DNA of 64,000 bases from contig DF237050.1 of NCBI GenBank assembly GCA_000708835.1, positions 139,296 through 203,295 on the forward strand, written 5' to 3'. The notes beneath the pieces were generated by a model. It did no database searches. It was not told the origin of the DNA and saw only the letters and a list, made by a program, of their open reading frames with translations. Both the position numbers and the translations under genes were made by a program. Shown here one piece after another: positions 20,549-64,000 of the stretch; within the stretch, counting starts at the first letter, position 1; each line of letters starts with the position of its first letter. Source of the DNA: Klebsormidium nitens. Lineage: Eukaryota; Plantae; Klebsormidiophyceae.

Positions 20549-20915
20549 ATTCAGTCAAGTATACACACCAACTGTTCCATAAACATGGCTTCGATGAGAC
20601 TGTTTCGCACGTATGCAGCTGAAGCTTTGATTCGCAAGTTAGGGCTGCTTCCGACCGTCCCAGCTCAGTCAGAGCACGGTCCTGATATCGAAAGTCTGTC
20701 ATTCTGTCTGAAGAAACGTATATGCACCGGCACACCCGGGCAACCCGGCGTGGAAATTTGTTGACAAAGTGCATTCGAGTATTGCGCATATGTGTGGCAT
20801 TTCAACCTATACGTTGCTGGGGCCGAAATCGTACATGCATGATCGGTGCAGCGGGCCACGATCGATTCCGATCGACGTAGTGAACAATAACAGCCAGTGA
20901 ACAGTAACGGAGACG

Positions 20916-43173: not shown

Positions 43174-44971
43174 TCATATACAGGCGTGCTCTTCATTATT
43201 TTGATGCAACGTCTCGCGACGATGTAAGTTCTGGCACCATTCCTTGTGCGCGCCCTTCCAGGCAGCTTTCTGGCACTCTGCAGGGACAGAAAGAGGGAAA
43301 GCGTTACACTAAGATGTTCTCAGAATGCACAGAAGGCCAGACATGAGAAAAGGGAGAACTTCGAAAAGCTACTTCTTACAGCAATGTTTAGTGGGCCGTT
43401 GAATATCTCCAAGCAACGAAGCATTCGGCTATCCATTTTGCAGTTTGTGTAATCAATGTCGTCAGTGTCCTCAGTGATGGTGTTTCCTTGCCGTTCACGT
43501 TGAGGCGGCGGATCTCTTTTCTGCTATTAACAAGCCGTCAGGCATGAATGAAAATCGAAGTATGTACAAAGATGATATTACACATGAAAGACGCGGAAAA
43601 GATGTCGATTAAGAAAGACAGGAACCCCTCAATTGAATTGAGCAAGCACTTGCCTCGGCTGCAGTAGACGCTCAGCTTGCACTGGCGGCACACCTTGAAC
43701 TCCCCTGGCTTCTTCTCCTTCTTGCTGCAGCCGGTCGCCGAGCACGACCGCTTCGCGCGCGCGTCCAGCCACCCCAGCCTGGGGGCCACCGTGGCGTCCT
43801 TCACTGGATATTTCTCCCCGTGCCTCTTGACTATCGGCAGAACCCTGTTGAAGTGCGGCTCTGACACGATCGCGGCCAGCTGCTGCGCGCGCTGCACCCG
43901 CGCGCCGTCTTTGCGCGCCTCCTTCTCGAAGTGGCGCCTTCGCTCCACGGCGTTCCGGCCCGCCGCCTTTGCACCGCTAGTGTCCTGGATCGCCACCCCC
44001 AGCGTCGTCCCCAACATTTTCAGGCTCCGGGTGGGGTTTCCGGCCGGATTCGGGCTGGCCGGAACCGCCGCCAAGATGTGGCAAAGGGGCAGCAGGTAGG
44101 TGCCCGCGGAGGGCCCGGCCAGCCGCTGCCGCCGGTCGTCTCCCTGAGTGAGGAGACACAGAAGATAGCACGCGCTCTCGATGAGCGCGCACTCTGCGGC
44201 GGAGTGGATGATGTTGCTGATCCAGTACAACACCCAGCCGTCCAGGTCGGGGTCCTCCCACAACGGGTACACGTGGCACAGCAGCAGGAAGGCGTCGTGG
44301 AGGAATTCGACGTCGGACACGTCCTGCGACGTGTGAACTAGGATGGCGTTCAGCAGCTCCGTGTGTCGCGCGCACCGCAGCCTGAGCTTGTGAGACCAGA
44401 GGGATAGGTGCGCGAGGCACGACAGGATGTTGGCGCGCGCCCATTGCTTGACTTCAAGGATCGCCTCTTCCGTCAATCTGCTCCTGCATTCCTCTGACAC
44501 GGGGCACTCCACTCCTCTGAGGTACACCTCTGTTAGGAGATCTAGCAAGTCTGGGACTGACGCTCTGATTGCTCGGAAGGTGCGCTTGTCTTCGGTGAGG
44601 CAGTACAGCACCTTGGCGCAATCCGAGGCCCAGCTGCGCACCAGGGGGTCCGCATCTTCCGCAGTGTACACCAGCCATTGGCCCGCGGCCGCAGTTCTCA
44701 GGCCCACGGCTAAAGGAGCCAGGATGCCCGCCTCCAGCAGGAAAGCTGCGCAGTTGACCGTCGTCTGGCGCGGGTCCTGAGGGGACTGCTCGAAGCGGTC
44801 CTTGTTTGCGTCGAGCGTGTCCAGTGCTCTCAGCATCGCCGTGGACTGCGCCTCTAAGCTGGTGGAGCGCAGATCCGCCGCAATCTCCTGGAGCGCCCGG
44901 GAAGACTCGGGCCTTAGGATTTCTTTTGCGGTAAGGCTGAGAGCAGGACTGTCTGGCGAGGTGGCCGCCAT
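43174..44971 (-). CDS. Helical (ARM-like) domain protein with C-terminal MYND zinc finger, 2 exons
   Basis: Exon 43654-44971 ends CSATGCSKKEKKPGEFKVCRQCKLSVYCSR. A GC-AG intron (43278-43653) joins it to exon 43174-43277, ECQKAAWKGAHKEWC..*, which completes the MYND consensus. Confidence 0.85.
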
Positions 44972-45238
44972 GAGGCACCTCCAAGTGAATCACAAGGAGT
45001 GTTCTGTCACCGCCATAGCGTCGGGGCTACATTGATGCTTCAGTACAACCTACAAGCTTGAGATCAGCACTGATAAGCGTGCATGGCCGCCTCGATCAGG
45101 CCCAGCTTCTCGTCATGCTTGTGCTGCGGCTGCGCGCTCCTTCATTCGCCATGAACTTCTGCTATGACCTTCGATTCCTCTGCCCCACGTCACGTCAATG
45201 ACTTTCTTCTAGAGGAAGAACGGAGGACTTGACTTTCT

Positions 45239-45300
45239 GCGAAGACATGTCACATCTGCGTTTCGAGGTGCGAAGACATGTCACATCTGCGTTTCGAGGT
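45239..45300. repeat. Perfect 31-bp tandem duplication
   Basis: GCGAAGACATGTCACATCTGCGTTTCGAGGT occurs twice, at 45239-45269 and 45270-45300. Confidence 0.95.
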
Positions 45301-45717
45301 GCTTGAGTTGGTCCGCTTGCAGCGCCTGGGTCTTGTCATCGTCGCTGTCAAATTGATGGACAAATGATTACGGTACTTTTTGCTGATCGAGGCTTTCGGA
45401 CTTTACCGAGACGAGATCGATGCGAAATCAAGAATACTAGCTCATTGAGACATTCTTGATACACCCCATCGATGCTGCCGCGCTCTGCCTGCCAGCTTCC
45501 AAGTCGGTCAGTTCGATGTAAACTGCCACGGAGCAATTTCCCTGCCCTCCCTCTAATTAGCGCTGCATGTCCCGGTCGCGGTACTAACGAAGATGGACAC
45601 CTGTCACCTTTGCCATCTGCGTTGCTGATGCGTGGTTCGTCGATCAGCAATTCAGGCGTTCGTATGGACATGTAATGCTGAAAGCCTTCTAAACTCTGGA
45701 GCTTCCTTTTGACTGCT

Positions 45718-45960
45718 CACAGGGCGGATTCCCGTTTCCCCGGTGGTCGGGCAAAGCCCGGGCAGTACCCCGGGGAGCGTGTTCCCCGGCCATTTGCCCG
45801 GGCTTGGGCCATGTCCGGAAAAGTTGTCAGATCTCCGGGGTTTGCCCGGCGATCGGGCAACAAGCCCGGGCAACGAACCCCGGGCAACCAGGTCGGGCAA
45901 CAGCAAACGCATGTCCGGGCAAGACGTTTCAGTCAGTCCCCGGGCAAACATCGGGGAATG
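45718..45960 (+). repeat. Left TIR plus subterminal array of CCCGG(G)CAA motifs in both orientations
   Basis: Roughly 8 copies, e.g. TTGCCCGGG at ~45794 and CCCGGGCAA at ~45865, ~45877 and ~45939. Confidence 0.9.
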
Positions 45961-47324
45961 TCCGGAGAAATGAGAACGGCAGTAATCTTGTAAGAAGCAC
46001 AGCAGCAGCACGTAATCAACGATGTAACACATTCAGGGATCATAAGTTGCGTTTGATTGTTTCTAAACCAACGAACGACGGGCTTTGGACGGACTGACAC
46101 TGCTATCATTAAGAAGTACTGGCGAGACAACGAGTTCACAGAACGGCAGTTCTACCTAGGCTTAAACCTAAACTTTGAGCTGAACTACAAAAGTGTTCCC
46201 GGTTGTCTGTAAGCCGTCCAACTCTTCTTCAGGTGGCTTCTCGACCTGCCGCGCGCGTACTACGAGACATCCGTTCAGTTGCGCGAAGTAGCATGCGTGC
46301 ATCGTTATCTGCACCAAGGGAAAACATATCGTAGTCAGAGAGTTACGTTCTGCAGACATGGCAACCTTGTACGCTGCAGCTCGGAGGGTCGCCCTTCAGA
46401 ATCTACTCGAAATCAGCAGTCTGTCGAACCAGGATTCGAAGTCGACACAAAGTGGAAATGCTGGCGCGACTTCGTTTAGGTCCGAGCGTAATCAGATGGA
46501 CACAACCTGCATGAGAAGCTTGCAAAGCGAAAATATTAATTTCATATCACAGCCTACAGCCAATTGATCTCTCGGTTCGCAAGCGCGTAGGCAATACAGC
46601 TTACCTTAGAGATGCTGCAGTTCTATTGCCAGTGCAAGATCGCTCGTGTCACTGCAGAAAAGGGGTTCGACGATTGGGAAATGCTCAAACAACTCGGAAC
46701 GACTGATTCGATTACGCAGTAGATTGCCTTCCCAGCAAATTGAGAACTGAACGAGACCAGAACTGAATGATCTTTCAGACGCCAACCTTGATTGGAGAAC
46801 GATACAAAAGAAGCTTTGACTAGCTTGAAAAACGAGAAAGGAGAAGGCAGAGGCTTCCCACCTTATTGGTTGCCAATTCGTGTTGAACTTGCGGATGTTC
46901 TGCAAAAGCAAAATATGAAGTCAAAAAACCGTGCATTCGCGTTTCGGCACACTACCGCTTCACCTCCTGCTTGAATGATGTTTGCGTGCCTCTTGTGCGC
47001 AGAAGAAGCACTCGCAGATCTGAACGCGCGTGCCCCAATCCGACTCTCCGATTTTGCCAACACGAAACCCGCTTGCTGTGCAATGATTGCAGCAACACGA
47101 AAACACAGTGCACTGCATATGATTCACGAGAGGTACACAAGTAGCACACGTAAAACACACGAGAAGCCACACGCGGTCTTCTTGGGACGCATTGCTGTTG
47201 CCGCCTCTAAGCGACAATAGCACAGGGACCTTGAAAGGTCCCCAATTTGAATGGACAACCAAATCCAGCAGGCTCTTTTGCGCCATCCCCTTAGGACAAG
47301 AAGGTGCCAACGACAGCTCACCTC

Positions 47325-50300
47325 TTAAGATACGAAGACTTCGTTGGGAGTCAACTTCACCCCGTCCTCGCGCCACTTCTTGTTCGCGATGTAAACGCGC
47401 TCGTCATCAATGGCCCCTTCACTCAGCAATTTCAGCAGGTACGGCGTGTCAAACGTCTCCAATTCCGGCGACTTCGAAATGTTTTCGAGCTTGAGGCCGT
47501 TGATCGCCTTGATGGCCTCCTTGCGAGTCACCTGCGACAAAGGTATACCGGTAAATGCCTGTACACGAGGTCCCCAAAATGAAAGGGCAGTGAACTTGAA
47601 GATCGTCAGACGGGAGCCCTAAGAGAGTATGCACCATGCGCATATCAGCTTGCTTTATGTACGGGAAACGGCGGAAACTTTGGCAGTTAAGCAAACCCTG
47701 TAACCGGTCTGGGAAGCCCGTAAGGCTGGTTATTAATAACCAGTCCCGGGCGGGTTGTATTAGCGTGTTAACCAGGCCTGGGTCTTTCCGGCGAGCAGGA
47801 TATATGAGACTTATTCCTGGCTAACTAGAGTCCGCCTGTCGGACAAGCACTTAATGGGCCTCGGCAGAACCTGGTTAGTTGAAGGAGTCTTCGCTTATGT
47901 CAGTCGTTGGTCAGGCGATTGACCAGTGACTGGCTCAGCAAGTCTATTAACATCTGGAAGTAACGGCGGCTCAAATGCCGAGCCAGTCACAGTCGGGTTA
48001 GCTCCTCGTCTACGTGCTGACCCACTGCTGGTTAGGAGTCGCACTCGTAATATGCCAATCCCAGCCCTTGTCGAGTAACTTAGGTTATAATGGTCCGCAA
48101 AAGAACTCCGATCATAGGGACGGTTTCCAACTTTCAACCGACCGAAACCGAACAGAACCGAACGGAATTTGGAGCTTTAATGACCAGAGCAAAACCTCCT
48201 TAACGAGAGCAGCATCTGTTCAACGATCAAGACCTCGATGAAACCTGGTTGCGTCGGCGCCAGGGCACTGCAGCCGGCACTAAAAAACATGACGCCTAGG
48301 TGAAGAGCTCTTCCTCAGCCTCTTCCTTACCTGATACGCAAACTTGACGCGGAGAAATTTCATGGCGATGACCTCGTACTTGGCCTGCATGTGCTTGTCG
48401 ATCTTCTCGTGCTTGTCCTCAAACGCGCCCCCGATTGGCAGGTCGGAGATGGGTTCCTCGTCCGAACCGGGGTCTGAAGACTCGATGACGTCACCATCCA
48501 GGTCCATCTCCTCTTCGCTCTCCTCCTCGTTCTCGCCCCCCTTCCGCTTCCGCTTCTTCTTTTCCGCCTTTGCTATATTATTCCTCTTTCCGCTGGCTTT
48601 TGCCGCACTCTTGCCTTTCGCCGTTTCGCACGCTGCCTCCCCTGCTTTTCCCGCCTGACCAAACTCGCACTCGCATCCCACTGCCTTGCAAAGACCCGGT
48701 TCGTGGAACTTGCGCTGCCTTACTGCGTTCCGTTTTGGCCGCGCGGAGACTTCGTCACCGGCCGTTTCGGTCCGGCCGGTCCCTGTCTCTTCCGTTGGTT
48801 CGGTTCCGTTCCGCTCCTGGTCCTTCCCCTCAATTTGCTGTGGGTCAATTGTTTGCGGAACGCTGCCCGCGCCCCGTTCTTCTTCCCCAGCTCCAGGGCC
48901 TTGAGTTGCATCCTCGCCGCTTTCCTCTTTCCGGGGCTCGATTCGCTTCTTGCCCTTCTGAAGATTTGACCCAGTGCTTTTTGCCTTCTTTGGTGGCTCC
49001 TCGCCACTGCCGGTTCCTTTTCCGTTTCCGCTTCCGCTCCCTTCCGCCCGTGCGTCTCGCTTCCGTTTTTCGTTGGTTACATTTCCCCCGGTTTGGTTAT
49101 CTCCCCGTGCTTGCTGATCGGTCTTGCCGTCCTGCTCGCCCTTCTCTTTCCCATCCACTGCTGCCCCTTGCTGTTGGACGGTGTTTTGAGGGACGCTGGA
49201 GGACGAGGGTTTGTCCTGGCCGGTCGAAGTTGCTGCCGGGAGTACTTCCCAAACCGGTTCCGGGCTGCTCGACTTGGGAGGCGTAACTATAAAAGAAGTT
49301 CCTCCGCTCCTTTCCACCTGAAACAGAACACAAAGTCAGTGAGTTCTAAGAGTGATGAAATTGCACGAAGCCTTCAGTCAGTAGAATTACTCGTGAGCAA
49401 GCAGCAGGCTCTGCCTCGATTCTACCAGATCTGCTGCATCTGCTGTGCAGAGAGGCAGACCGCGCGCGCGCGCACGCGCGCCCCACGTTGAACCTGCCTC
49501 ACATAGATTCGGTGATAAGAAGAAAAGCAATACTGAAGAGCAAGATGGATTTCAGCTCATCAAGGCAGGCTAAATCCTTGTTGTTAAACGAAGCAGAAGC
49601 TAGCAAGTTGGTTCGTATATGTCGTTGCTTTGGCCTTTGAAGACTGTGTGACCAGAGAGCTGGATCCGTGTGCATAAGCTTGCTGAATCGATGTCCAGGT
49701 TATGCAAGAACGGAGGTCAGTTGTTAGGGGACACTTTTAAGTAGACTTTCCCCGAGATGAATGACACTGACGAGAGGACAGTACACGAGTCCAGAGAGCC
49801 ACGACGTTTCGTGCACGGGTCATCGATAGCGGGCGCAATTACACCGTGCTCACGAATCTGCTTGCCAATGGCGACGTTGAGGCGCCTCGCCCAGCCTAAA
49901 GGGTCGCCGTTCAAAGTTAAGGTGGAACAAGCCGTCTCAGAAACGACTCCGGGGCCCTTCTCCGCTTGGCAGCCCCGACCAAGATGTGCTCATTCCATTG
50001 ATTCCGTTTGCGTAGTGGATGTTCGGACAGAAACGTACCTGCTTGAAGCCAGACTTCTCGGCGGCATGCGTCTCGCAAAGAAAGTCTGCCCCGTCGTAGT
50101 TCTCCACGCCGAAGCGGTCAAGCATCATCTTTTGCATGCAGAGGTTGTGCACCGGCTTCTCGCACACGTGGCACATGTGCGCAGGCCGCCCGGTGGTCAC
50201 GGTGCATGAGCTGATGACGCAACGGCTTCGAGCCGGCTGTTCTTCGGCGGCTTCACTAGTTCCCTGCAAAGGATGCGGAGGGTGAAATGAGCTCATTCAG

Positions 50301-52946
50301 GCCGAAGGACTTGCTGTTATCAGATTTGAAGCCAAGGATCGCTGAGGAGGACCACTTAGCACCTCAAATACTGAATATTATCTGCCCTGTTCATGATCCG
50401 TGTTCTCAGTGTTGGGTGGCTCAATCGCAAAAGGCGTAGCATTAGGCCAGGCAACGTTGAGACTATGCGAAGCTCAGTTTCTGCGAAGACTTGGAGTCGA
50501 GTAGGCTGAACAGGGAAAGATTAGTGATTTCTTAATTTAAACGGAGATCAAACATAGGGCGAGCCAAAATCCTATGGAAGTCCCAAGCGCACATCATTGT
50601 CAACTTCTTCTGGTTCATGCTCACCTGCAGTCCTTGACGATTTGCTTCATTACCAGGTGTGGGTACTGTTTCGCATCTCTTGTTTGGCTGGGGTCGATCC
50701 CCTCCCTTACGCCTGACCTCCTGCATGAATAAAGCTCGAGTGTGTGAGGAGCAGCCGGTGACAGTCACAAGAATGGACGGCTGTTGCGAACATGATGACC
50801 TGTAACTTCCAAATGCAGAACCGAAAAGGTTGGCCGTGCTTCCAAGCAGAACTTTAGTAGCTCGTAAGCATTAGTGCCAGCTAAAGTCTCCTATGACGTC
50901 TACCTTCGTGCGGCTCGCACCTTTCCAAAATCTCTCCTGGTTGGTGGAACATAGCTAGCAAGATCTCTCTAGGAGTGTGAAAAGGCACCTGGTTCTCTCC
51001 CTCAGCCCCGGTTGTCTCGAGCGTTGATCCTTTGGGTGCTCGATCGTTAGATGTGGACAATGCTCTTATCTCGCTTGCCTTCGGTTGGTCGCTTTCTTTT
51101 TGACTCACCTCCTGCAGTAAAGTCCTTTGGTCAGAAATTGAAATGAGTACGAGGTTCCGTGCAAGAATAATCTTCAGTGGAACTTAATGCTTGCACAGAT
51201 CAGTACCTTTGCAAATTTCAGAATGGCTCCGGTTGTGCTGCCAAAGTAGATTACAGTTGCGCGTGAACTCGGCGCCTGCTACATGTAGTGCATAGTCAGA
51301 CTGAAGTTGCTTTCACCTGTGCTTTGGCGTGCTGCGCCCCGTTCCCGCTTTCTCCTGGTGCCTGAGCCTGGCCTCCCGCATAGCTTGGACTTACGCCTTC
51401 AGCAGCTTTGCCGCCTTGTGCCTGCATAGAAGGACCTCCACTTGTTTGAGACGGCAGTTGATCCTACCAGACAAGTATGTGCAGACCAAATGAGGTTGTC
51501 TAATCGCAATCAGCATCAAACAGGCCAGACTATATTTGTGCGGCAAGCTCAGTAATATGCAATTCAGATTCCATCATGAACCATCTCGTGTCTAGAAAAG
51601 GTCGACATTGTCCGAGCACTTACCTGGATTCTGGTAGCTTTGTATTTTGTCGCCTTCTTTGATTGTTGTTCAGCGTAGCGTTCAGGATGCAGTCGGAGCT
51701 CCTTGAAATGCTCCACAATCTGTGAGAAGGATTTATTGAAGGACTCTGCGATCAAGAGACAGAGAAAAGCAATCAGTGATCTGTATTCAAGGTCGCTGGT
51801 CAGACACGGGCCCTTCTTGATCACTAAGATCCAGGTGACTACTCAGCTTTGGCTCAGGCTCAACCTCCTGCTTGACCTTTTACATAGCATTCCGAGCATT
51901 GAGCTCACAGCACAAGAAAAGCTGGAAGGACCAAGAGGTCGAGTCAGCTTGCGATCCCTTCACCGCACTGGAACCCACAGGCTGATGACGTGAATACTGA
52001 CATTACTCTTCATTCATTCCTTGATTCATTCCTTGATGCTGACTTCTAAAGCACTCAATACTTCCAACCACATTGATCAGGCATGAGTATCTTTCCCAAC
52101 ATGGCTGCATTAGAGTGCCATAGGAAAATGTCACCACAACCTCTTAGCCTTATCTCCAGAAAGAATAGTCACGCTGATTCAAATTGGAAAGCTTGGGAGC
52201 GTGCGCAAAGATTCAACTCACCGGTCGGCCACGTGTATGATTTGCCATTTTTGACCTCTAGCTCTCCACCGTCGGTGTCTTCCATAGTTTCTTTGAAGAT
52301 TGCTTCCCTCCATAGGATGTCTTCTTTTCTGGTTTTGAAATTCATCATCCTCACACGGTCGACTGTTAGCTTCTCGAAGGCCGTCTCTATCCTGTCTTTC
52401 AGATCTTTGTACCACCTTCGAAGTGTCCGCACGGCAGGCTTTCCGATTCTGCTTTCATAAGAACCACTGTGAACCATATGAGAGAATAGATGTTCAAGAT
52501 CCACAGCATCGTCGGCAGACTCAATTCGAGCACTTCCTTCTTTCTCTCTAGGGTCTTGAACTCCTTGTGGCTGAGAAAATTTAGCTCCAGGCTCTGCATT
52601 GAGCTCATCAATCCTAGAACTCTCCTCGAAGGGGTTTCTAGGACCACCAGCTGATGATTTCTCTCTGAGTGAAATCTCGACACACTCGCCAGCAGATTGT
52701 TGCCAGCCTTGCTTCAACTTCTTCAGAAGCGCTGAATGGCCAACTTTGATTTTCACACCACTCTCCATCTCGACAAAGAAGTCAATTGCTCCATCTTGAA
52801 GCGCTAGAAAGGCTTCTCCAGTCAAGCACTCGTCAATTACGTACGTGCTATATCTTGCTGTGGGCACCAAGCTGTTCAGCAATCACTTTAGCTAGTTCTT
52901 CCGCTGTAAAGCTGGTCACTTCTTCAAGGCTAAACCTGGCAGCCAT
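47325..52946 (-). CDS. Transposon-borne second gene (TnpA-like accessory protein) with SAM-like N-terminus, PHD-like finger and long charged low-complexity region; model incomplete and frameshifted in the first exon
   Basis: ATG at 52946 gives MAARFSLEEVTSFTAEELAKVIAEQLG, continued in another frame by RYSTYVIDECLTGEAFLALQDGAIDFF..KIKVGHSALLKKLK. Exon ~51625-51720 gives IVEHFKELRLHPERYAEQQ. Exon ~50040-50262 has C-x4-C-x10-C-x2-C-x4-H-x2-C-x20-C-x2-H. Exon ~48330-49317 is K/E/G-rich and splices in phase 0 to exon ~47340-47530 (VTRKEAIKAINGLKLENISK). The 3' end may extend to ~46170. Confidence 0.55.
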
Positions 52947-53816
52947 TGCAACGCGATCAAGCGGGGATCAGGCGCTCACGGTTCCTGCATTTGAGCAACC
53001 ATAAAGCTAATCTGCCAGATCTGCGACTTCAACAAGCTTTCTTGCTACTACAAAGAGAGTCTCTATTATCTACTTCTGCAGTGGATTGCAAAGTGGCGGG
53101 AAGTGTTGTCAATTTTAGCTGGCATTGCTCCCGCATTGCTGCAATTGACGTTCAACTTCACAGCTTCCAGAGTGTTCAACAGCACAAGCTGTCAGTGTCC
53201 ATACATCGACGGTTAGTTTGGAGATGCATGGTTCAATCGACGGCACCCGGTACGACTACTCCAGTGCGCGAGCTCTAGAGGGATCGCAGCTAGCCCGGAC
53301 ATTGAGCCCGCAGAACCCTAATCTGGATTCGATTTTTAACCAATTTATTTCAAATATTTGTGTAATTTGGCTTGTGCCAAAAGCGGAATGACTGGCATGA
53401 ATTTTCAATGTTTGACACTCTTCTCCAACCAGCATGTTTTCATGTTGCTGTGCCACTGAACCAACAACTATATATCCCTGCACCGATCTTCACTTCTTCA
53501 AACTGCCAATGATCAAGAGGCTCTTGGCCAGCTTTCGGAACTTACAGCGGTCACTTCGTGGATTCAAAGGAGGACCATGTCTAGGATAAGGCTTGATATT
53601 ATGTGCTGGAGAATGAAGTAGAAGTGGCTTTTTAGCCCTTGGTGCACCAAAGTAGAAACAAATCTAACAGATTGAAGGAAAAACAATGTCAATATTGGTC
53701 ACGCAAGGCTTAACTTCTTGGCAAAGAAGCTGACCCTCAGTGAATAGACACAAAAAAGATGGACAAGAGCCAGTCCAGACCTTCAGCCAGCAAGTTGAGC
53801 TGCTTCTAAGCAAAAA

Positions 53817-56800
53817 ATGATGAGACGCAGGTATGTGAAAACATCATTTGTCTGTGAGTGAGCTTTTTGGAAGATAATGTGTGCCCCATTGCTGAGCACT
53901 GGCTGAATACTTGAGCTGAATACTTGGACAACTGGACAATCTGCTGTCTTGCATAGCCTTGGCATGTCCTTTGTAGAGACATTGTGCGGAGCACCCTGCA
54001 TCAGTGCTTGTTATGGCTGCAGGTCAGTTGCATGGCATTGGCTTGACTTTTGTGTTTTCTCATGCGGTTGCCCTCACAGCCTGATTGCTTACATTTCTCC
54101 TCCAGATCAAGACAGCCTCCAGTTAACGAGGACGGCCTTGAGCTCTGCACTTGCGTATTTCAGGGCTGCGGCAAGAAAGAAAGCCGATATATCCCAAGGA
54201 CGACACGCTTGTATCACGAAGCTAGAGATAGAGAAGTACTAGAGGCAGCAGAAGTAGTCCGCATCCCTGAAGGCAATGCCGGCTCAGCTTGCGGCACTGA
54301 GAATGAGGAGCAGGATCACGGGGGTCTCGTTGAGGGCGCTGATCAAGCTCAGGCAACCGGGGGAACTGATACTGATGGAAATGCTGCCTGGCAAGGGCTT
54401 GCGAACCGGATGGAGATCGACGTTGAGGCGCCCGACTTTGATCCAACAGAAGCAGAGCCAGCGGAGGATCCGCTGCTCTTAGAAACAGGAGTAGAAATCC
54501 TAGATAGAGTGCTTGATCTGGTGAAGAAGGGCGACGCGGCAGGGTTCAGCAACAGTGATATTAATTGGATCCTGAAGTGGGGACTAGGGCAAAAAGAGTC
54601 AATCGCCGCCGCACTGGACCCTGACTGGCGCGCAAGAGCTAAAGACCTCAACATCATGGACTCGCACGACCAGGTTGGCAAACATCTATGCATGGTCTCA
54701 GCCCGTTGCTTAGGCCTGGTCCTTGCTCTTGTTGATACCACAGCGTAGACCTGCCATCATGGGTAAAAGGCGTGCAATCCTCATTGTTTGGTCAAAGCTT
54801 GAGTGCCCCTTGCTCCAATGTTTCATCTGGCGGCAGCTTGTGCTTGTCTCCAAATTCTCTAGTCAGAATCCGCAAGCAGACTTTGCATTGGTGATTGTAA
54901 GGTGACATAGATTGAATTATGATGGTTTGGCACTGAGCGCACACGTTTCCGCACAAGTTTCCGGTTAGGTTGAGATCAGCTCATGAGCAATTGACAGTAC
55001 CTGCACGTGTTTGGAACGAAGGGGAGCCAGAGTTCTTCTAGTACATGAGGTATCGCGGAGGGCTTATTTGCAACCTTAAACTGTGATCAGATTCGAACCC
55101 TCACAGACTGATGCAGTCGCTGGATATACAATCTGGAAGCCCTTGGCTTACCTCTGACCTCTATCCACCACAGGTCTTTAACTTCCTGATGCGCACGTCG
55201 CGCCTGCTCGGCGAGCCGCAGCTGTGGCGGTTCCACGAGGGTGACGCTGGAAGCTGGCACCTGTTTAGACCGAGCGCAGAAGATGGCGACCTGCCCTGTC
55301 CGCACTGTCTGGAGGGGCCCAACCGGCCAAAGTGGCGCGACTGCCCTGCGCATCAAGAGCGGTGCGAGTGTGGGTTCCTCCGGCGGGATGCGCTGGAGCT
55401 GCCCTACATCGGGCTGGAGCCGTATGTGCGAGCGAAGCTGACCACCGAGGCTGGCTGTGAGGATATGCTGGGGGCTTGGCGAGAGCGAGAGCGGTGGCTC
55501 AATCAACCTCTTGAGCGTGTGCCGGAACCCCAGCTCGAGTACTGGGACGGAAAGCGCTTCCGGGAGCGGTCCAATTTCTTCGATCCGAACGCCACGTGGC
55601 TCCTCCCCCTCGCTTGCCCAAGCTGCTGTCGCGAGCGCCCCGTCTACTGCTCAAAAAACCTGGAGCTCCCCTTCTACGTTCGGCCGACTCCAGAGATGTG
55701 GAATGCAAGCAGCGGCTGCTTTGAAACCGAGTGCCCATCCTGTCGGCAGCCCTTTAGCGCCAGAAGATGGGAACTGGAGTGTTCCGGAGACCCAAGGAAC
55801 GTGATCTTTGGGTGCCATGTGGATGGCTTTCCCTCCTCGCGGACGACCAACAAGAGCAGTTGCATCCTAGACGCCACCCCCTTGGTCGTTTCGAAGCGCC
55901 TACGCTACCGCGCCTGCGAGGGGTGGCTCTGGCCCCTTTGCTTTCCCCCGGAAGAAAAACTGAAGAGCGGCCCGGAAGCATACGACCCGTTCATGTTGCT
56001 CCTAGTCCTAGATTCTATCCGGCTCTTTACGGATGGAATTCTGGTGAAGTACGCACTCGATCCCGCCAAAGTCAGCCCGGACGTCCCCCCTCGAGACGGA
56101 CGGCCTGTTCGCGTCCGGATGGTCATGTCCTGCTTCTTCGCCGACCTTCCCGCCCTTGCTGACGTGGCAAAATTCAAGAGGGGGGGGTGGCACGTGTCGC
56201 GACGGTGTCCGCAGAGGGCAGTAAAAGTTGGGGACCAGCTAGTCTATGCGAACGGGCGGCGCCTTGTGCGCGACGGCTGCGGAAGCAAGGAGATGCAAGA
56301 CGTGGTGGCTGCAATGTTGGAGCATCTCGGGGCGAAGACGAAAGCGGAGCGGGACGAAATTGGCCGAAGAACGGGGGTCGTGGGGTTTAGTATGCTGGCC
56401 ATCTTGGGGGGGGTGTACGAAATGGACCTGGTGCTTGACCTGTGCGGTGACTGGCTGCACAAGGGCTCGGAATATCAAGTGAAGCACCACGCACGGGACA
56501 CGTTGCTCCCGGTCACCAAAAAGGTGGGTGACGTTCTGGTGCAAGTAGCACCCCCCCGCGTCAATCTCAAGGAATTCGGAAAGCGGCTGCAAGCGATCAG
56601 CCCCACGCGTAAGCTTGCGGACGGCCGGTGGGTGAAGGATCCGGAAGAGCGCTCCCTCGGATTCTGGAAAGCCGAGGAGCACGAGAAGGCGGCGCTCTAT
56701 TGCTTCGAGACTGCTTTTGCGGGAATCATAGACGAGGAGGGGTACGCCGTCACCCAGCTCGTCGCGCGCATCCAGCAAGCGGTGTTCGTCATCGGCTCCC

Positions 56801-58735
56801 GGCAAGGCTGGACCCCGCAGCTGCGAGCAGTGTTTGACCGGCTCTGCAAAGCCAAGTTCGCGCGCGCCGAGGAGTACTTCGGCCCCAAGCTCCGCCCTCT
56901 CGAGCACGACACCTGCCTCCACACCCTGTCGGACATCCTCAATCACGGTCCCCCCGACAGCCTCTGGTGCTACCTCTGCGAGAGGCACATTCGCAAGCTC
57001 ATCAACACCCCCAACAACGGGAAAGAGTATGAAAAGACGTTGTTCAAGCGGGCGCTGAGCGGGCTGGTTGTCGATTGGCTGCAGCAGCGAAGAAAGGAGG
57101 CGGCGCTGTGGCGGGCGCGGCAGTCGGCTGGGGACGAGCTGTGGGGTGAGGCGAGGGAGGGGTTAGAGGGCGGCATCGTGTTTGCCTCCTCGCAAAAACG
57201 GGCGGTCGCGTACGTGGAGGGCCTTGAAAGGTGGCTCCCGAGCAACCGGCAGCCGTCCGACGACAAGCTGCTTGGGAGCGTCCGCGCAAACGGGGTCGCC
57301 GTCGGAAGCCTACCACGAACGTGGGGGCCCCGTGCATACAAGACCCTTACAGCCCCGCAGCGGATCGGCGTGGAGGGAATTCTCGCCAGGTTGGGAGCCG
57401 GAAATGCAAGGGGCCTCCAGCTTGACTCCAAAACCGTAGTGTTTTTGAAAAGCCTGCAAAAGGGGGAGCATAATTTCGCCCCAAAAGACTTCGTGGTATT
57501 GCGGGGGGCCGCGGCGGGCGCGGAAGGGGAGGAGCAGTTTGGACGGTTGGAAAGCATCTTTTCCGCGGCAAACAGGCGCGGCGCCAGGCACCTGTTCTTG
57601 GACGTCCGGTGCTTTCCGGTCCAAACGGAAGGGGGGGAGCCTGCGGGGGGTCAGTGGCACAATTGCCTCTTGCTGGGAGCCTTGAAGCCGTTTTCTGGAG
57701 ACCGCGTGCGTCCGGCGAGCGCCCTAGTGCGTCACTTTATACCGTACGCGGAGCCGGGCGAGACCGTATTTACGAGTGCGTCGAACCACGTCATCGAGGT
57801 CTTCCCCTCCAGCTTCGGCTTTGACGCGGACGACGTTTGGGTTCCTGTTTTTCCCCGGGTTAGCGATTGTTGTCGTGTCTCTGGCTTTCTTTGTCTTCGG
57901 CTGTTCTGATTGCTATTCAAGGTGCCGAGGTTGCACTGACCACTTTCGTCTCAGTTTACGATTCAATGCAACTCTCTATTTGACTTCATAACGAATGGGA
58001 TGGGACGCTCGCTTTCCGAACGTCCGGCAGGTTCGCAGTCTGTTGGGAGGACCTTTCCTGTTGTCTGCAAGTTGCCTGTGGTGACAACTACCTTGCTGCC
58101 ACGCTTTTTGGCGCACGACACGCAACAGAGGTGCCGGCCGGATCAAGTCAGCTGTGGATCCTTTCAATGGCAAAGACCTTTTACTTAACGGACTCCTCGT
58201 AATACCTTGACAGGTCGGTGACGTCGTCCGGCTGCCGGTGGTGGAACCGCCTGACGTCATTCCGGAAGGGGTAGCTGGGAAGTGGGGCTACGGAGTGCCC
58301 TTGTCCGTGCTGAAGTCGGTGCGGCCCGGGCAGTCGGTGGCGTACGCTCTCGTCAGGCGAGTGAACGAGGAGAACAAGATGGTGGACGTGCAGTGGCTGA
58401 AGCGGACTCCTGGCGAGAGGACGCTGCCGGACGGCAGCAAAGCGGGCATCTGGGGTTTGTGGCCGGTTAGCATGCGGACAAAGAACGGCGCCCTGGTCGA
58501 GGAAGTGGAGGGGGAAGCTGAAAGCGACTCAGATGCGGAGGCGGAAAGCGATCGGGTTCAAAGCGGGCGGGCAGCAGGGTCGGAAGGGCGGTTCGCTTTA
58601 AAGCGCGCGCACTGGAACGCAATCCTCGATCGTGTTGAGGGCGTCCAGAGAGCCGAACGGGATGCAGACGGGCGTGCTTTGGCAGGGGGGCCACTTTTCA
58701 GCTTCAAAGAGCTGCCCCCAGTACGACGACGATGA
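53817..58735 (+). CDS. CACTA/EnSpm-type DDE transposase, 4 exons, about 1260 aa
   Basis: Exons 53817-53830, 54106-54673, 55174-57858 and 58214-58735 splice in phase with no internal stops. N-terminal CTCVFQGC..RTTRLYH. Core motifs EYWDGKRFR, HVDGF (D), FFADLPAL (D), CGDWLH, FWKAEE, NHGPPDSLWCYLCERHIRKL (E). C-terminal beta-rich BAH-like segments KDFVVLRG..FGRLESIF..LFLDVRCF and RVGDVVRL. The 14-nt first exon is tentative. Confidence 0.88.
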
Positions 58736-59419
58736 CCGGTGTTGGGGGAACGAGAGAAGGCCGTTGGACGGGGTTCGGTTAAGGCTCAGAAGCTAGACAG
58801 CATAGTTCTCGGGGGCCGGGCGGGTTGCGGGATACGAAAGGAGCTCTAAGGAGATTGAGCGGAATGAGGTACGCAGCGGAAGTCAAAACGAGCAGAAACC
58901 GAACGGAAGTAGAGGGTTCCAGCGGAACGGAGAGGGGCCTGCTGGCGGAACGTCTGGCCCGGCCAGAAAACGAAGCGGAAGCGAAATGCAGTCGGCAACG
59001 CGAGCGGATCCAAGCGCATTGTCTCAACAACCGGGAAGAGTGTATGGAGAGTGCGGGGATGGAGCGGAAGCGGAACCATTCTGGAAACGGATCGGAATGC
59101 AGATTGCCGTGCAACATTCAAGCGGAAGGAGAAACAAGCGCAGTCTGGATTGAAGCGGGAGAAGGTCGGCGCGTATAAACTGATAGCTACGAGTGGTTGT
59201 TCAGGCGGAGAAGCGAGCCGGTGGAACGAGATGCTGACCGCCGGTCCTCGCGATTCCCTCTTCCGAACGGCCGGAACGTCCCAGCGCCCTCGGTCGCCTT
59301 GGCCGGTGGAGCGAGCGGACGCGCGGTCAAGCGCGGACGCGTCCGCGCACTGCCTGCCGAAGCAGGTCCGGGGACCCCTGATGGCGGAGAGGACGCACTG
59401 AAGCCTTGGTAAGCACGTT

Positions 59420-59860
59420 GGCAGGAAGCTAGTGTAAATGTGTACCAGATTCTGACGTCACCTGCCTTCGCACACAGGCTGAGTGAAGACCGACGCGCGC
59501 ACAAGGTGCCGCACTTCGATCGTTGCGTCACAGGCCACAAAAGGCCATAATCACTGAATAAACCTAAAGCTGACGTGAGCAATTGCTGAATTCTGACGTC
59601 AGAGTGCACCCGCGCAGGCTGAAGAGGGGGTGGCGCGCCCCGGCGAGGTGCTCTAGGTTGATCGCTGCAGCAAGGGGTTGACAAGTACGGATGTGCGGAG
59701 TGGTCCAAAAGCCGACGTGAAAGATCCCTTTTGCTGACGTCACGCGTGTGCTCGCGCAGGCTAAACCAGGATACGGCGCGCGCGAGCTGCCGGAGATTGA
59801 CATGCCGGAGCTAGCGGCATCGCTGGGGTAACTGTTCTGGAGCGGCACTGCCTGCGGACG
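59420..59860. repeat. Degenerate 141-bp tandem repeat (3 units), each with TGACGTCA
   Basis: TGACGTCA at 59453, 59594 and 59735 (141-bp spacing), each followed by CGC(G/A)CAGGCT and G/C-GCGC. AAAGC(T/C)GACGTGA precedes units 2 and 3. Confidence 0.7.
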
Positions 59861-62800
59861 TCGTCAAGGTGAGATTGCTCGAGTGTCATCTATGACGTGA
59901 AAGCCCTCCTTTCTTCAGTTAGTATGCCATTTTCGCTCCTTCCTCGGGTCGAGTGTTCAAAGGAGTGACTTGATCGTTAGCCTTCGTCCATGTTTACCTG
60001 GGCAGTCGCGGTGTAGATGAGCTTCTTTCTTGGGGGCATCAATGCGCTCAAAAGTTACCGTTGACATCTTGATTTTCGGGGGTGATTGAGCTCGTCTTTG
60101 TAATCACGAGTGGTTTCCACCTTTGGCCGCCTCCAAGCGCGCAATCTCACATCGGCGGCTCTCAGTCTCATCTAAAGTCTCCGCTAGACACTGCCTCCGA
60201 ACCCTTATGCCGGTCGGCGGACGCGATCATCGACAGTCTGCTTCAGAGAGAAGAGGGTAATGTTTTTGAAGGCCGGTTGGTTCATTCGCCAGTAAACCTC
60301 CAAGAGCTATATCGTTCCCCTCGGTCTGTGGGAAGATCTCGGTGCTCTTGTTTTCCTAGGTTTTTCCTGTATCTTCTAGGGACTTGCTTAGGACTGACCT
60401 TCTCCGATCGCACCTCATGTAGTAGGGCTGTAAAACGTGCTGATGACGAGAAGGATCTAAGACTGAACCAACAATTATCGAAAGTTGACCTTTCTGAATT
60501 CGCCTCTTTTTTCCGCAGTACGGTCCGATCACGGACATGGTTCACAGCAGCACCGAGCAGGCTGGCACCACCTTGGACCGCACAGACTTCGCCCCGCCCA
60601 ACATACAACCGTGCCTGCCACGTCAGCAGTCTAGGAACGCCACCGGTAGGTCTCCACGGCCATTTATGAAGCTATATTTTCTTCGACTCTATTTCAGAAG
60701 ATATTGTTATCCCTTCAATGCCGAGTTTCTAGTCCGTGCGTGGCAGCCAGTGGCATGTCGAGTGTTCATACGATAAACAGCAGCGCGGCCGCGTCGGGCG
60801 CCAACGGCACACGTTCTAAACGAGGAGGTGAGGCGGCCGGAAGCGGAAAACAACCGGAGACGGAACGCCACTGGGCCCAACAGTTCCAAGACAAGTCCAA
60901 ATCTGATCGATCCAAACGGAACGTATCAGGGTTCCTCCATGGATTCAAATGGATTCGAACAATTGCAAGCTTTGACCACTCTCTTATCCAGGTTTAGACA
61001 GGTGTCAACGTCGTCCACTTTCCTTTGAAGGCGTTTGAATTGACGCAATGAGCAGGACGGAAGATGTGTGGGGTATTCATCTCGGACGCGCGCCTTCAAC
61101 TTCTTTTGCCTCCAGTGCAGCTCGCACGCCTCGGGCGGATGTTCCAGAGCAACCTCAGCCCTCAACGGTCTCGGTCGTTATTGCAATTCGCCGCCGCCAG
61201 CGCCAGCTGCGCGCTCACGTGGTTGCACCTGCGCGCCACCCAGGTGAGACTGGCGACCTCAGCAAGGCTTTCCCTTAGCGCCGCGCCTACGCACGCGCCA
61301 AAAAAGCCGGCGTACGCACTCGTTGCCGCCCGGGCGGAGCGCACGCCCGGGCATCGGAAATGCTCCCAAGTCCGTCGTGTGCTTGGTCATACTCTTGTAC
61401 GTACTGGAATGTCGTGTGCCTTTGTCTCGCTTTCCTCATTGCACTGCTTTGATTCTGCCTGTTTGAACTGTTTCTATCGACAAACAACGGACGACACCGC
61501 TTACTTTCTCTCGTCAACTTGAAGATCCGAACGCTCCGTTCCCGTTTGGTGCAGGGGCCCTTCTCCTAAGAGGTGCCTAATTCACGCGCACGCGCAACGC
61601 GGCCGCGATCGAGCCCGATAAATTCGTGTTGAAAGTGAGACGTCTGACCACTGCTAACATGTCCTTTTTGAAGACGCAAGTTATAGTATGATTGCCTATC
61701 GCCGCTTTGTGCATTTGAAAATGTGTTGTGCGGCGACGAAATTCACGTGGATCCCGGCTACGAAAGTCCTGACTTCCAGCGAACTGTGTATGGGTGGCAA
61801 TCATGGTCCCCTAAACTATGCAACGTACTGCTCGAGGGTTCACTTTGGGGACTTGCGGCAAACGTCTGGTGGAGAGCGCTCTTATCCTTTCGCAGACACA
61901 CTAGTCCTGATGTCAGTCGGGCTTTCGAGATTGTCTTTGAAGGAGTTCCAGATCAATTGGCATGTGGACACCGTACTACAGGAGAAAGGAGATTCGTTCT
62001 ATGTTCTGTCGGCCTCCTATTGAAGCAAAGCTTTCAAGCATGCAGCCAAAAAAGGAGGAGGGTTTTGTAATTTCCTCCCTTGAACTCATCAGTTTTCGTA
62101 CCCGTGTGCTTTTCCTGTGGGTTTCTTCCAGCAGACGTTCAAATTCTTTGTTGCAGTGGGCCTTCATGCTTCTCTGGCCGCACCAAGCGGCATGTGACGC
62201 TTTTTTTTGAGAAGAGAAGAAGCCGCTGCGAGCCCCACGGCGGCCATACGCAAACGGAGCCCTTTCCAGTGCTATACAGCATCTTCGCAGGTGAGGCTCC
62301 TCAGTTTATGTTGGCTGGAAGACTTTCTGAAATCACGTAGCGACAGATCGTCTTTAGAATGCTCGAAGCAGGCAAGCCCTCAGCAGCATCCTCTTACTCA
62401 CTGTCCGGAATCCATTATCCGCATTAAGTGTACCCTTCACATGTGGTTGTCATCAAGGCAGCCATCCGACAGGAACCCGACATCCAAGCTTTTTGTGATA
62501 GACGCTTTGGGTTATTGTCGTGATATCGGGACGTCCCCTTTGTCTCGAACAGGAATAAGATCTTACTTTGACGCATTGTCCGGTATCGGGACTACAAACG
62601 AAACTCAATGCAAGGACAACAGACCAGTCAAACAGCGTTCGTTGGAACGATTCTTTGTTTGCACTGTATATGCACATCATGATGATGCTTGCACAAACAT
62701 AAGTAGACCGGTTCTGTGACGCGTCGTGAAGCACAAGTGGCCAACATGTATACTGAAGTCGACAAAAAATGTGTTTTGTCTCTTGTAGAATTGGCTGAGA

Positions 62801-63084
62801 CCACGCGAGTGCGAAGTCCGAGGTCACAACGAGATCGACCCAAAGAAAGGGCTAGATCAGCCGCTCAAGGTCCCGCCAGCTTTACTTTAATGTCAAAGAC
62901 CGGGCGTCTGTTCAGCGTGTTTTTCAGGATAGATCCAAGTCTACTCAAAAACGATCAGTGAGGTAAACTGCCAATAGAACATATTTGAAGCAGACGGTAA
63001 GTGACTTGGTAACTATTGTCTATCAGACGGGAGAAGGCTTGCTCTATGTAAAGTACTGAAGCTAGAAAACTTGGCGGCTAAGTC

Positions 63085-63393
63085 AAATCTTGCCCGGGTA
63101 TTCTTTCGTTGCCCGGACTACGTTGCCCGGGCTTCTCCCCGATTTCCCCGGTCATGTGTGTTGCCCGGTCTTTGTTGCCCGGGGTCTGCCCTCGTGGTCC
63201 CCGGACATGCGAGTTGCCCGGCCTTTCGTAACCCCGAGCGGCACCTCGGGGAGTCTTTTCCCCGGCCTTATCTCCGGGCAAATTTGCCCGGGGGTGCAAA
63301 ATCCCCGGGCAATTCTTCCTCCAGCTCGTTGCCCGGCCTCAGGCCGGGGAACCCCCGGGCAATAAGCCCGGGCAAACGGGAATCCGCCCTGTG
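63085..63393 (-). repeat. Right subterminal array of TTGCCCGG(G) motifs plus right TIR
   Basis: Roughly 11 copies between 63090 and 63375 in both orientations, followed by AAACGGGAATCCGCCCTGTG. Confidence 0.9.
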
Positions 63394-64000
63394 GCTGGCT
63401 CCAAGTGGCCCCAAGTGACCTCGGAAAGAGAATCTTCAGTCAGGGTTGGACCTCTACCGAAGCTCTAGCCCTCTTCCTGATTGTAATGTTAAAGTCTGCC
63501 TGACTGACTCGGAGGCTCGTCCCTTTGGCGTTGGCGTGGTCAAGTGGGCAGAGTAACCCGTATCATTACTCACACTAGATATTGACAGATCTAGAGGCCA
63601 ACGTGAGCAGTGGAAGCTATCAATATGGAACTTCTTGTGATGAATTGATTGCGTCACGATATCATAATCTCGGCCTATCTAGGTCTTGAAGGAGCTCCTA
63701 AAGCGTGCCTGCTTTCAAAGAGTCATCGTTCGCACGAAACGCTGGCTCTTCTACCACCCCGGTGACCGTACGTGCATTCCAAACCTTTCCGTCGAATATC
63801 ATCCGTATGATACGCCCACGAAACGACCACATTGCGCTCGACTGTTCGAGCGTGGCCCATGAAGCAAGTCTTCCTATTGAACTCTCATACTTATCTTTTT
63901 GACCAAGACAGCTATCCTACTGCGTCTCTACTCGTGGTGCAAAGATCGTAACGCGTGATATAGTGAGATGCTCCGGAAGCACAGGCGTCGTGTAACGATT

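Follow-up and report, generated by a model that had tools for sequence, protein, structure and literature searches.

What kind of mobile element occupies 17.7 kb of the genome of the streptophyte alga Klebsormidium nitens, and is it complete enough to move? The question arose from a 64-kb window (the whole stretch of DNA analysed here, contig DF237050.1, positions 139,296 to 203,295), for which a preliminary description made from the letters alone had proposed an intact CACTA/CMC transposon with cargo. The segment in question, 45718-63393 of the window, was very probably a DNA transposon of the cut-and-paste kind, full-length and with two genes, from the CMC (CACTA/EnSpm-Mirage-Chapaev) neighbourhood. 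The proposed CACTA/CMC nature was upheld by its ends, the target site duplication (TSD), the terminal motif arrays, DDE and D-x-x-H residues, a transitive link to Transposase_21 and a predicted fold like that of RAG1 and Transib. Such an element is known in kind, and its distinctive parts were a BAH-like tail on the transposase and an orphan partner gene.

Limits and ends of the element

The element was 17,676 bp long, with its limits set by terminal inverted repeats (TIRs) and the TSD. The left TIR (45718-45737, + strand) read CACAGGGCGGATTCCCGTTT, with likeness continuing to 45743, and the right TIR (63374-63393, - strand) was the exact reverse complement of CACAGGGCGGATTCCCGTTT. Pairing of the two was 20/20, and 25/26 when the repeat was extended to 26 nt. 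When up to 3 mismatches were allowed, the two ends were the sole matches in the 64-kb window, with 0.01 expected by chance. The TSD was 3 bp long, with GCT at 45715-45717 on the left and the same GCT at 63394-63396 on the right, and the chance of such a duplication is 1/64. The termini read CACAGGG...CCCTGTG, i.e. they were of the CAC...GTG type found in EnSpm/CACTA. CAC..GTG termini and a 3-bp TSD are given as the criteria of EnSpm (Kojima 2025, PMC12730594), and at the DNA level both were present in this element.

Inside the TIRs, an 8-mer, CCGGGCAA, was enriched about 100-fold, and this enrichment was confined to the two element ends: 18 of the 20 window copies lay inside 45718-45970 or 63080-63393, where about 0.2 would be expected. 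The copies occurred in both orientations, with inward reading dominant at each end. The left subterminal array (45738-45970) held 7 CCGGGCA-type motifs, 5 inward and 2 outward, and included a 13-14-bp tandem at 45854-45902. The right subterminal array (63080-63373) held 12 of them, 8 inward and 4 outward, with a 53-bp tandem unit at 63108-63226 that was composed of CCGGGCA-type motifs. Perfect 20-bp TIRs, a clean GCT TSD and subterminal arrays in both orientations, all named in the preliminary description, were thus recovered. The two CCGGGCAA copies outside the element, at 20736 and 34576, were isolated, with no TIR near either.

The transposase gene

The transposase was the annotated K. nitens protein KFL_001010320 (P0001, 1262 aa), which mapped to the window as four exons without stop or frameshift, with a coding length of 3786 nt (1262 codons) and GT-AG borders in all three introns. 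Exon 1 (53817-53830, +) comprised 14 nt with the ATG, followed by a donor GT at 53831. Exon 2 (54106-54673, +) encoded the N-terminal region with a C-x-C-x4-C...H stretch, which gave no family match; this stretch is reminiscent of the zinc module of plant Transpos_assoc, for which Pfam gave no match here. Exon 3 (55174-57858, +) encoded the predicted RAG1/Transib-like catalytic core and then the BAH-like domain, and exon 4 (58214-58735 including the stop codon, +) encoded a conserved beta-rich C-terminal domain.

The 932-codon open reading frame (ORF) of exon 3, at 55111-57909, was 100% identical to KFL_001010320, and its residue numbers, which are used below, are converted into those of KFL_001010320 by adding 173. 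The exons were searched one by one, and the database entry KFL_001010320 served as the full-length query in place of a self-built spliced model. The gene spanned 4.9 kb, or 28% of the element. Both the uninterrupted spliced transposase of ~1260 aa and the gene length of only ~5 kb had been foreseen correctly.

Family placement and catalytic residues

A word search returned K. nitens proteins at 100, 84, 53 and 52% identity (the protein itself and its paralogues), plus two JGI proteins. The profile search with alignment A1 retrieved 368 relatives at E<=1e-3, including 34 at E<=1e-30, and the named relatives came from K. nitens, the liverwort Riccia sorocarpa and the fern Adiantum nelumboides. 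In K. nitens the family comprised five annotated loci (KFL_001010320, KFL_005610060, KFL_004030040, KFL_004530130 and KFL_004010040) with 52-84% identity. Two metagenome scans, one with the A1 profile and the other with P0005, revealed no related locus.

The connection to Transposase_21 (TNP2) ran through these relatives only and not through the window protein itself. Ten long relatives were searched with Pfam, and Transposase_21 was found in 8/10 at E<=0.01; for the 68 aligned relatives the figure was 22/68 at E<=1e-3. Neither set showed a match to any other transposase family. One relative, P0029, scored 35.6 bits for Transposase_21, above the gathering cut-off of 28.6, and another, the distant P0039, weakly matched Transpos_assoc, a transposase-associated domain model. 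Judged by these sequence matches, the transposase protein appears to sit in the TNP2 neighbourhood, in a streptophyte-wide family.

The signature of CMC transposases, reportedly described by Yuan and Wessler in 2011, is a DDE triad with [C/D]-x-x-H after the second D. The family consensus contained H-x-D-G, G-D-x-P-A, G-G-x3-C-R-R-C, D-x-M-H and W-C-x3-E-R, which we take to be the CMC motifs of those authors. The candidates for the DDE triad were D238, D345 and E624 (D411, D518 and E797 in KFL_001010320), which were conserved in 43/46, 55/58 and 36/38 of the non-gap rows, respectively. The D-x-x-H motif was present as D447-W-L-H450, in which D447 was kept in 51/52 relatives and H450 in 49/52. 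H599-x4-H604 was also present. Conservation of the catalytic motif residues amounted to 93-98% of the aligned relatives, except for H604, which was His in 24/42. For the CMC+Transib (CMCT) clade, C(2)C and H(3-4)H are given as protein motifs (PMC12730594).

Predicted structure of the transposase

The 932-residue reading frame of exon 3 was modelled with AlphaFold2 from a 68-sequence alignment, and the confidence was high, with a mean predicted local distance difference test (pLDDT) score of 92.3 and a predicted template modelling (pTM) score of 0.91. In a Foldseek search of PDB, RAG1 core chains came out best (E 1e-7, ~490 columns), followed by BbRAGL, HzTransib and the P element transposase. 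VIA re-alignment gave Z 14.7 for RAG1 over 432-454 residues, with residues 2-665 of the model set against RAG1 460-1008, then Z 13.3 for BbRAGL, Z 12.5 for HzTransib and Z 9.5 for the P element transposase. A Foldseek-independent search of 48,161 PDB representatives returned the same order, then ISCth4, Hermes, Tn5 and retroviral integrases. No CMC transposase was among the matches in these PDB structure searches, and to our knowledge no structure of a CMC transposase has been solved.

The core is predicted to fold like RAG1, RAGL and Transib; this is a likeness of fold only, at an identity of ~10%. Such a likeness is what is expected for the CMC+Transib clade (PMC12730594), and it is no evidence of membership in Transib. 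A RAG1-like fold had been predicted by the motif literature, and the model lends strength to that prediction.

Behind the core, residues 725-891 (nt 57283-57783) formed a separate beta-rich unit in the model, with pLDDT mostly >90. In the structure search of the PDB representatives, this unit was matched by ~19 BAH entries at Z 5.8-8.6, and the sole non-BAH match was a 62-residue chromo-barrel. The best match was BAH1 of DNMT1 (Z 8.6, 112 residues, 3.3 A), followed by ORC1 (Z 8.2), ZMET2 (Z 7.8) and TNRC18 (Z 7.5), and the others included MET1, EBS, AIPP3, ORC1b, Rsc2, DIM2, ASH1L, PBRM1 and ASI1. Foldseek matched the same region to 6vil at E 8e-3, and the profile reached only E 0.21 against BAHCC1. 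From the model, a BAH fold is probable for residues 725-891. Among paralogues its conservation came close to that of the catalytic core: this part was 78% identical to that of the paralogue KFL_005610060, versus 84-93% for the core, and 44-47% identical to those of two distant paralogues, versus 53-60% for the core; P0018, a relative with 24% identity, aligned across the BAH-like region as well. Of the 7 papers returned by a literature search, none named BAH or transposase in its title or abstract.

The tail encoded by exon 4 (173 residues) was conserved and beta-rich. Its AlphaFold model was poor (pLDDT 54), and the weak hints from Pfam were SH3-like (KIF2A-like_1st, with E 0.009, and SH3-B_UBE2O, with E 0.18).

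The putative partner gene and the remaining sequence

A putative partner gene (47328-52946, - strand) was located head-to-head with the transposase gene, with its ATG at 52946-52944. The spacer between the divergent start codons (52947-53816, 870 bp by the gene coordinates) is presumed to be a bidirectional promoter. The first exon (~52946-52313, -), the only one supported by a relative, encoded a SAM-like N-terminus together with a helical segment that was strongly conserved. That relative was the Logan fragment P0154, with 64% identity over 190 aa and near-identical blocks around a variable linker.

Three further candidate exons on the - strand had raised GC content at third codon positions (GC3): a PHD-like Cys/His exon (50296-49940), a long exon of 351 codons with charged, low-complexity sequence (49335-48283), and a C-terminal exon (47618-47328). 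Word searches with the first exon gave no K. nitens match and those with the 351-codon exon no match at all, both within the searched length range, so that any annotated protein of K. nitens above this length would escape. Protein atlas scores were 0.89 for PHD-like and 0.81 for SAM-like, both below the reliable level and useful as leads only. All ORFs and exons of appreciable size in the element were searched with Pfam, and no match rose above noise.

From the transposase stop to the right array extended 4.3 kb without recognisable coding (58736-63079), in which neither a family-supported ORF nor a match to Rfam or tRNA nor any repeat was found; Rfam and tRNA scans over the whole element revealed no RNA gene. 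The part at 58.7-60 kb was GC-rich (~0.6), and 58736-63079 could hold untranslated or alternative-splice exons, as in tnpA of En/Spm. No captured host gene was found in the element. The cargo of the preliminary description would better be understood as mainly the conserved orphan partner gene, together with the 4.3 kb without recognisable coding.

Genomic context

When the flanks were joined in silico, no reading frame was restored, so the element does not interrupt a gene; its position is intergenic. It was situated ~750 bp upstream of the start of the gene at 43538-44971 (-) and could affect the promoter of that gene. This nearest host gene was an ORF of 477 codons whose Cys-rich C-terminus was MYND-like. 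The left flank contained 2.1 copies of a 31-bp unit in perfect tandem at 45238-45302, ~420 bp away from the element. No further TIR copies or direct repeats of at least 40 bp were found in the window, and a literature search found no paper on CACTA elements of Klebsormidium.

Alternative explanations

Several observations speak against the favoured reading, and four other explanations were considered. The most serious of these explanations, quite possible and rated somewhat below an even chance, is that the element is structurally complete and no longer self-mobile, as an old single insertion with ends preserved by chance and a broken accessory gene. The partner gene showed an apparent +1 frameshift at 52862-52865 (-), where a GCCC run placed four bases for one codon: P0154 was unbroken across this site, and the window needed two frames, for residues 5-30 and 31-219. 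The frameshift may be true, in which case the SAM-like N-terminus would be cut short, or may be an assembly or sequencing error in the homopolymer CCC run. Since the partner gene appears to be frameshifted, the word intact in the preliminary description stands for the ends and the transposase only, and the element may rely on other copies for the partner function.

In addition to the lack of a second copy in the window, no annotated protein was at least 90% identical to KFL_001010320, which stood alone in its 90% cluster with the nearest annotated paralogue at 84%, and this argues against a recent burst. The perfect ends (TIRs 20/20) and TSD point to youth, however, as does the transposase ORF, with 1262 codons free of stops and all catalytic residues present. 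CpG was not depleted either: observed/expected was 0.94 in the element and 0.85 elsewhere in the window, while the GC content of the element equalled that of the rest.

It is less probable, and on balance doubtful, that the element belongs to another lineage of the CMC+Transib clade than EnSpm/CACTA proper, e.g. to Lanisha or to an unnamed streptophyte lineage. Lanisha is an EnSpm-like group proposed from the moss Ceratodon (PMC8245031; GenBank MT647524), and according to Kojima 2025 (PMC12730594) there is no secure basis for counting lineages such as Lanisha, Plavaka and ESTA within CMC or for excluding them from it. Such an origin would fit termini that read CACAG instead of CACTA, nearest non-algal relatives in a liverwort and a fern, and the results of Pfam, which even at E<=1 gave no match for the exon-3 ORF, KFL_001010320 or its paralogues in K. 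nitens, and which scored most relatives below the gathering cut-off of Transposase_21. The 3-bp TSD with CAC..GTG ends is the signature of EnSpm (PMC12730594), and this favours EnSpm/CACTA proper, together with Transposase_21 as the sole family among the relatives, once above the curated threshold, and the weak Transpos_assoc match of one relative. Because the termini are CACAG and the protein itself has no Pfam match, a placement within the CMC+Transib clade as EnSpm proper, in preference to e.g. Lanisha, would be tentative.

Further points against the favoured reading concern the proteins. No second protein like TNPA or Transposase_24 was found. The C(2)C position read S363-R-R-C366, with Ser as the first residue throughout the Klebsormidium clade and Cys there in 48/58 relatives. 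Sequence searches of PDB found no chain matching the transposase, and the profile gave neither a RAG1 nor a Transib chain. The BAH assignment was drawn from the predicted structure; Pfam BAH was not detected in the sequence, and phmmer found no match in PDB. As a separate observation, His361 was invariant in the Klebsormidium clade and might stand in for the missing first Cys of C(2)C.

It is unlikely that the 13 kb of non-transposase sequence is captured host DNA, i.e. Pack-CACTA-like cargo. Transposons have been documented to capture chromatin-reader domains (bioRxiv 10.1101/2021.11.30.470311), and the weak leads to SAM-like and PHD-like domains would be in keeping with host chromatin proteins; neither the partner gene nor the 4.3 kb on the right had a family assignment. 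Against capture, no K. nitens host paralogue was found for the two exons searched, within the searched length range, and the partner gene lies head-to-head with the transposase gene as in other two-gene elements. The domain pattern is, moreover, preserved in P0154, the only relative, whose 64% identity is near the divergence level of the transposase paralogues. Because P0154 keeps its domains at this identity, the partner gene appears more likely to be an accessory factor of the element's own than captured cargo.

That there is no transposon at all, and that a host or domesticated transposase gene lies between chance inverted repeats, is hardly credible: the gene appears to be single-copy among annotated proteins and is annotated as an ordinary hypothetical gene, but chance would yield a 20/20 inverted repeat 0.01 times, the 3-bp duplication flanks it directly, and the ~100-fold motif enrichment is restricted to both ends.

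Comparison with known systems

The full-length CMC transposon favoured here resembled En/Spm (CACTA) of land plants in its CAC...GTG termini, 3-bp TSD, bidirectional subterminal arrays of short motifs and size >10 kb. It also shared with TNPD/TNP2 of En/Spm a transposase with DDE and D-x-x-H, relatives matching Transposase_21, and the presence of a second gene. It differed from En/Spm in its CACAG ends, in a transposase below Pfam detection with Ser for the first Cys of C(2)C, and in the BAH-like domain and beta-rich tail after the core. The second gene was also different, being divergently transcribed and without similarity to TNPA or Transposase_24.

The predicted core resembled RAG1, RAGL of ProtoRAG and Transib (4wwx, 6dbo, 6b40, 6pqx), with Z 12.5-14.7 and 390-466 residues aligned to approximately RAG1 460-1008. 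In addition, the termini begin with CACAG like the heptamer of the RAG recombination signal sequence (RSS). In contrast to Transib and RAG, the TSD was 3 bp here versus 5 bp, there was no match at the sequence level, and the protein did not classify as Transib/RAG1-like. Unlike the case of RAG1, no RAG2-like partner was present in the element.

Chromodomains occur in the integrases of chromoviruses, and fusions of Chromo or PHD domains with transposases were listed by Grau-Bove et al. (bioRxiv 10.1101/2021.11.30.470311). As in such fusions, a fold of the histone- or nucleosome-reader type is predicted here within the polypeptide of an integrating enzyme, which would suggest chromatin-guided target choice; the reader fold is BAH-like here, in contrast to the chromodomain and PHD fusions.

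Proposed mechanism and significance

For this element, transposition may begin with the binding of the subterminal CCGGGCAA motifs by the transposase, alone or with the partner product, through the N-terminus of the transposase or through the partner protein. The bound proteins would pair the two element ends (synapsis), and the RNase-H-like DDE site would then cut at the CAC termini, probably via a hairpin on flanking DNA. Hairpin cleavage chemistry has been shown for RAG1 and Transib. Insertion would follow with a 3-bp stagger, and the BAH-like domain could plausibly anchor the complex on nucleosomes or on a histone mark.

A more specific version of this mechanism is put forward tentatively, as speculative and rather improbable on present grounds. 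In it, the protein is a chromatin-reading CMC transposase, whose target choice or restraint depends on a histone mark or nucleosome, and the SAM-like/PHD-like partner is a functional analogue of TNPA, which binds CCGGGCAA and oligomerises to pair the ends. If true, a form of the CACTA mechanism that is guided by chromatin and uses two proteins, not described before, would exist in an alga from near the base of the plant lineage, and the core would also be the closest structural analogue of RAG1 in the plant lineage.

With its ends, TSD, arrays and both genes, the element provides a well-delimited, complete reference copy for a CACTA-related family of a streptophyte alga. The family reaches liverworts and ferns and yet escapes standard family scans, so this reference would aid the annotation of repeats in charophytes and bryophytes. 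The proposed relationship of CMC, Transib and RAG1 gains structural weight from a high-confidence model in which ~450 residues can be superposed on RAG1, RAGL and Transib. If functional, the fusion of a BAH-like module with a DNA transposase would represent a new case of integration guided by chromatin.

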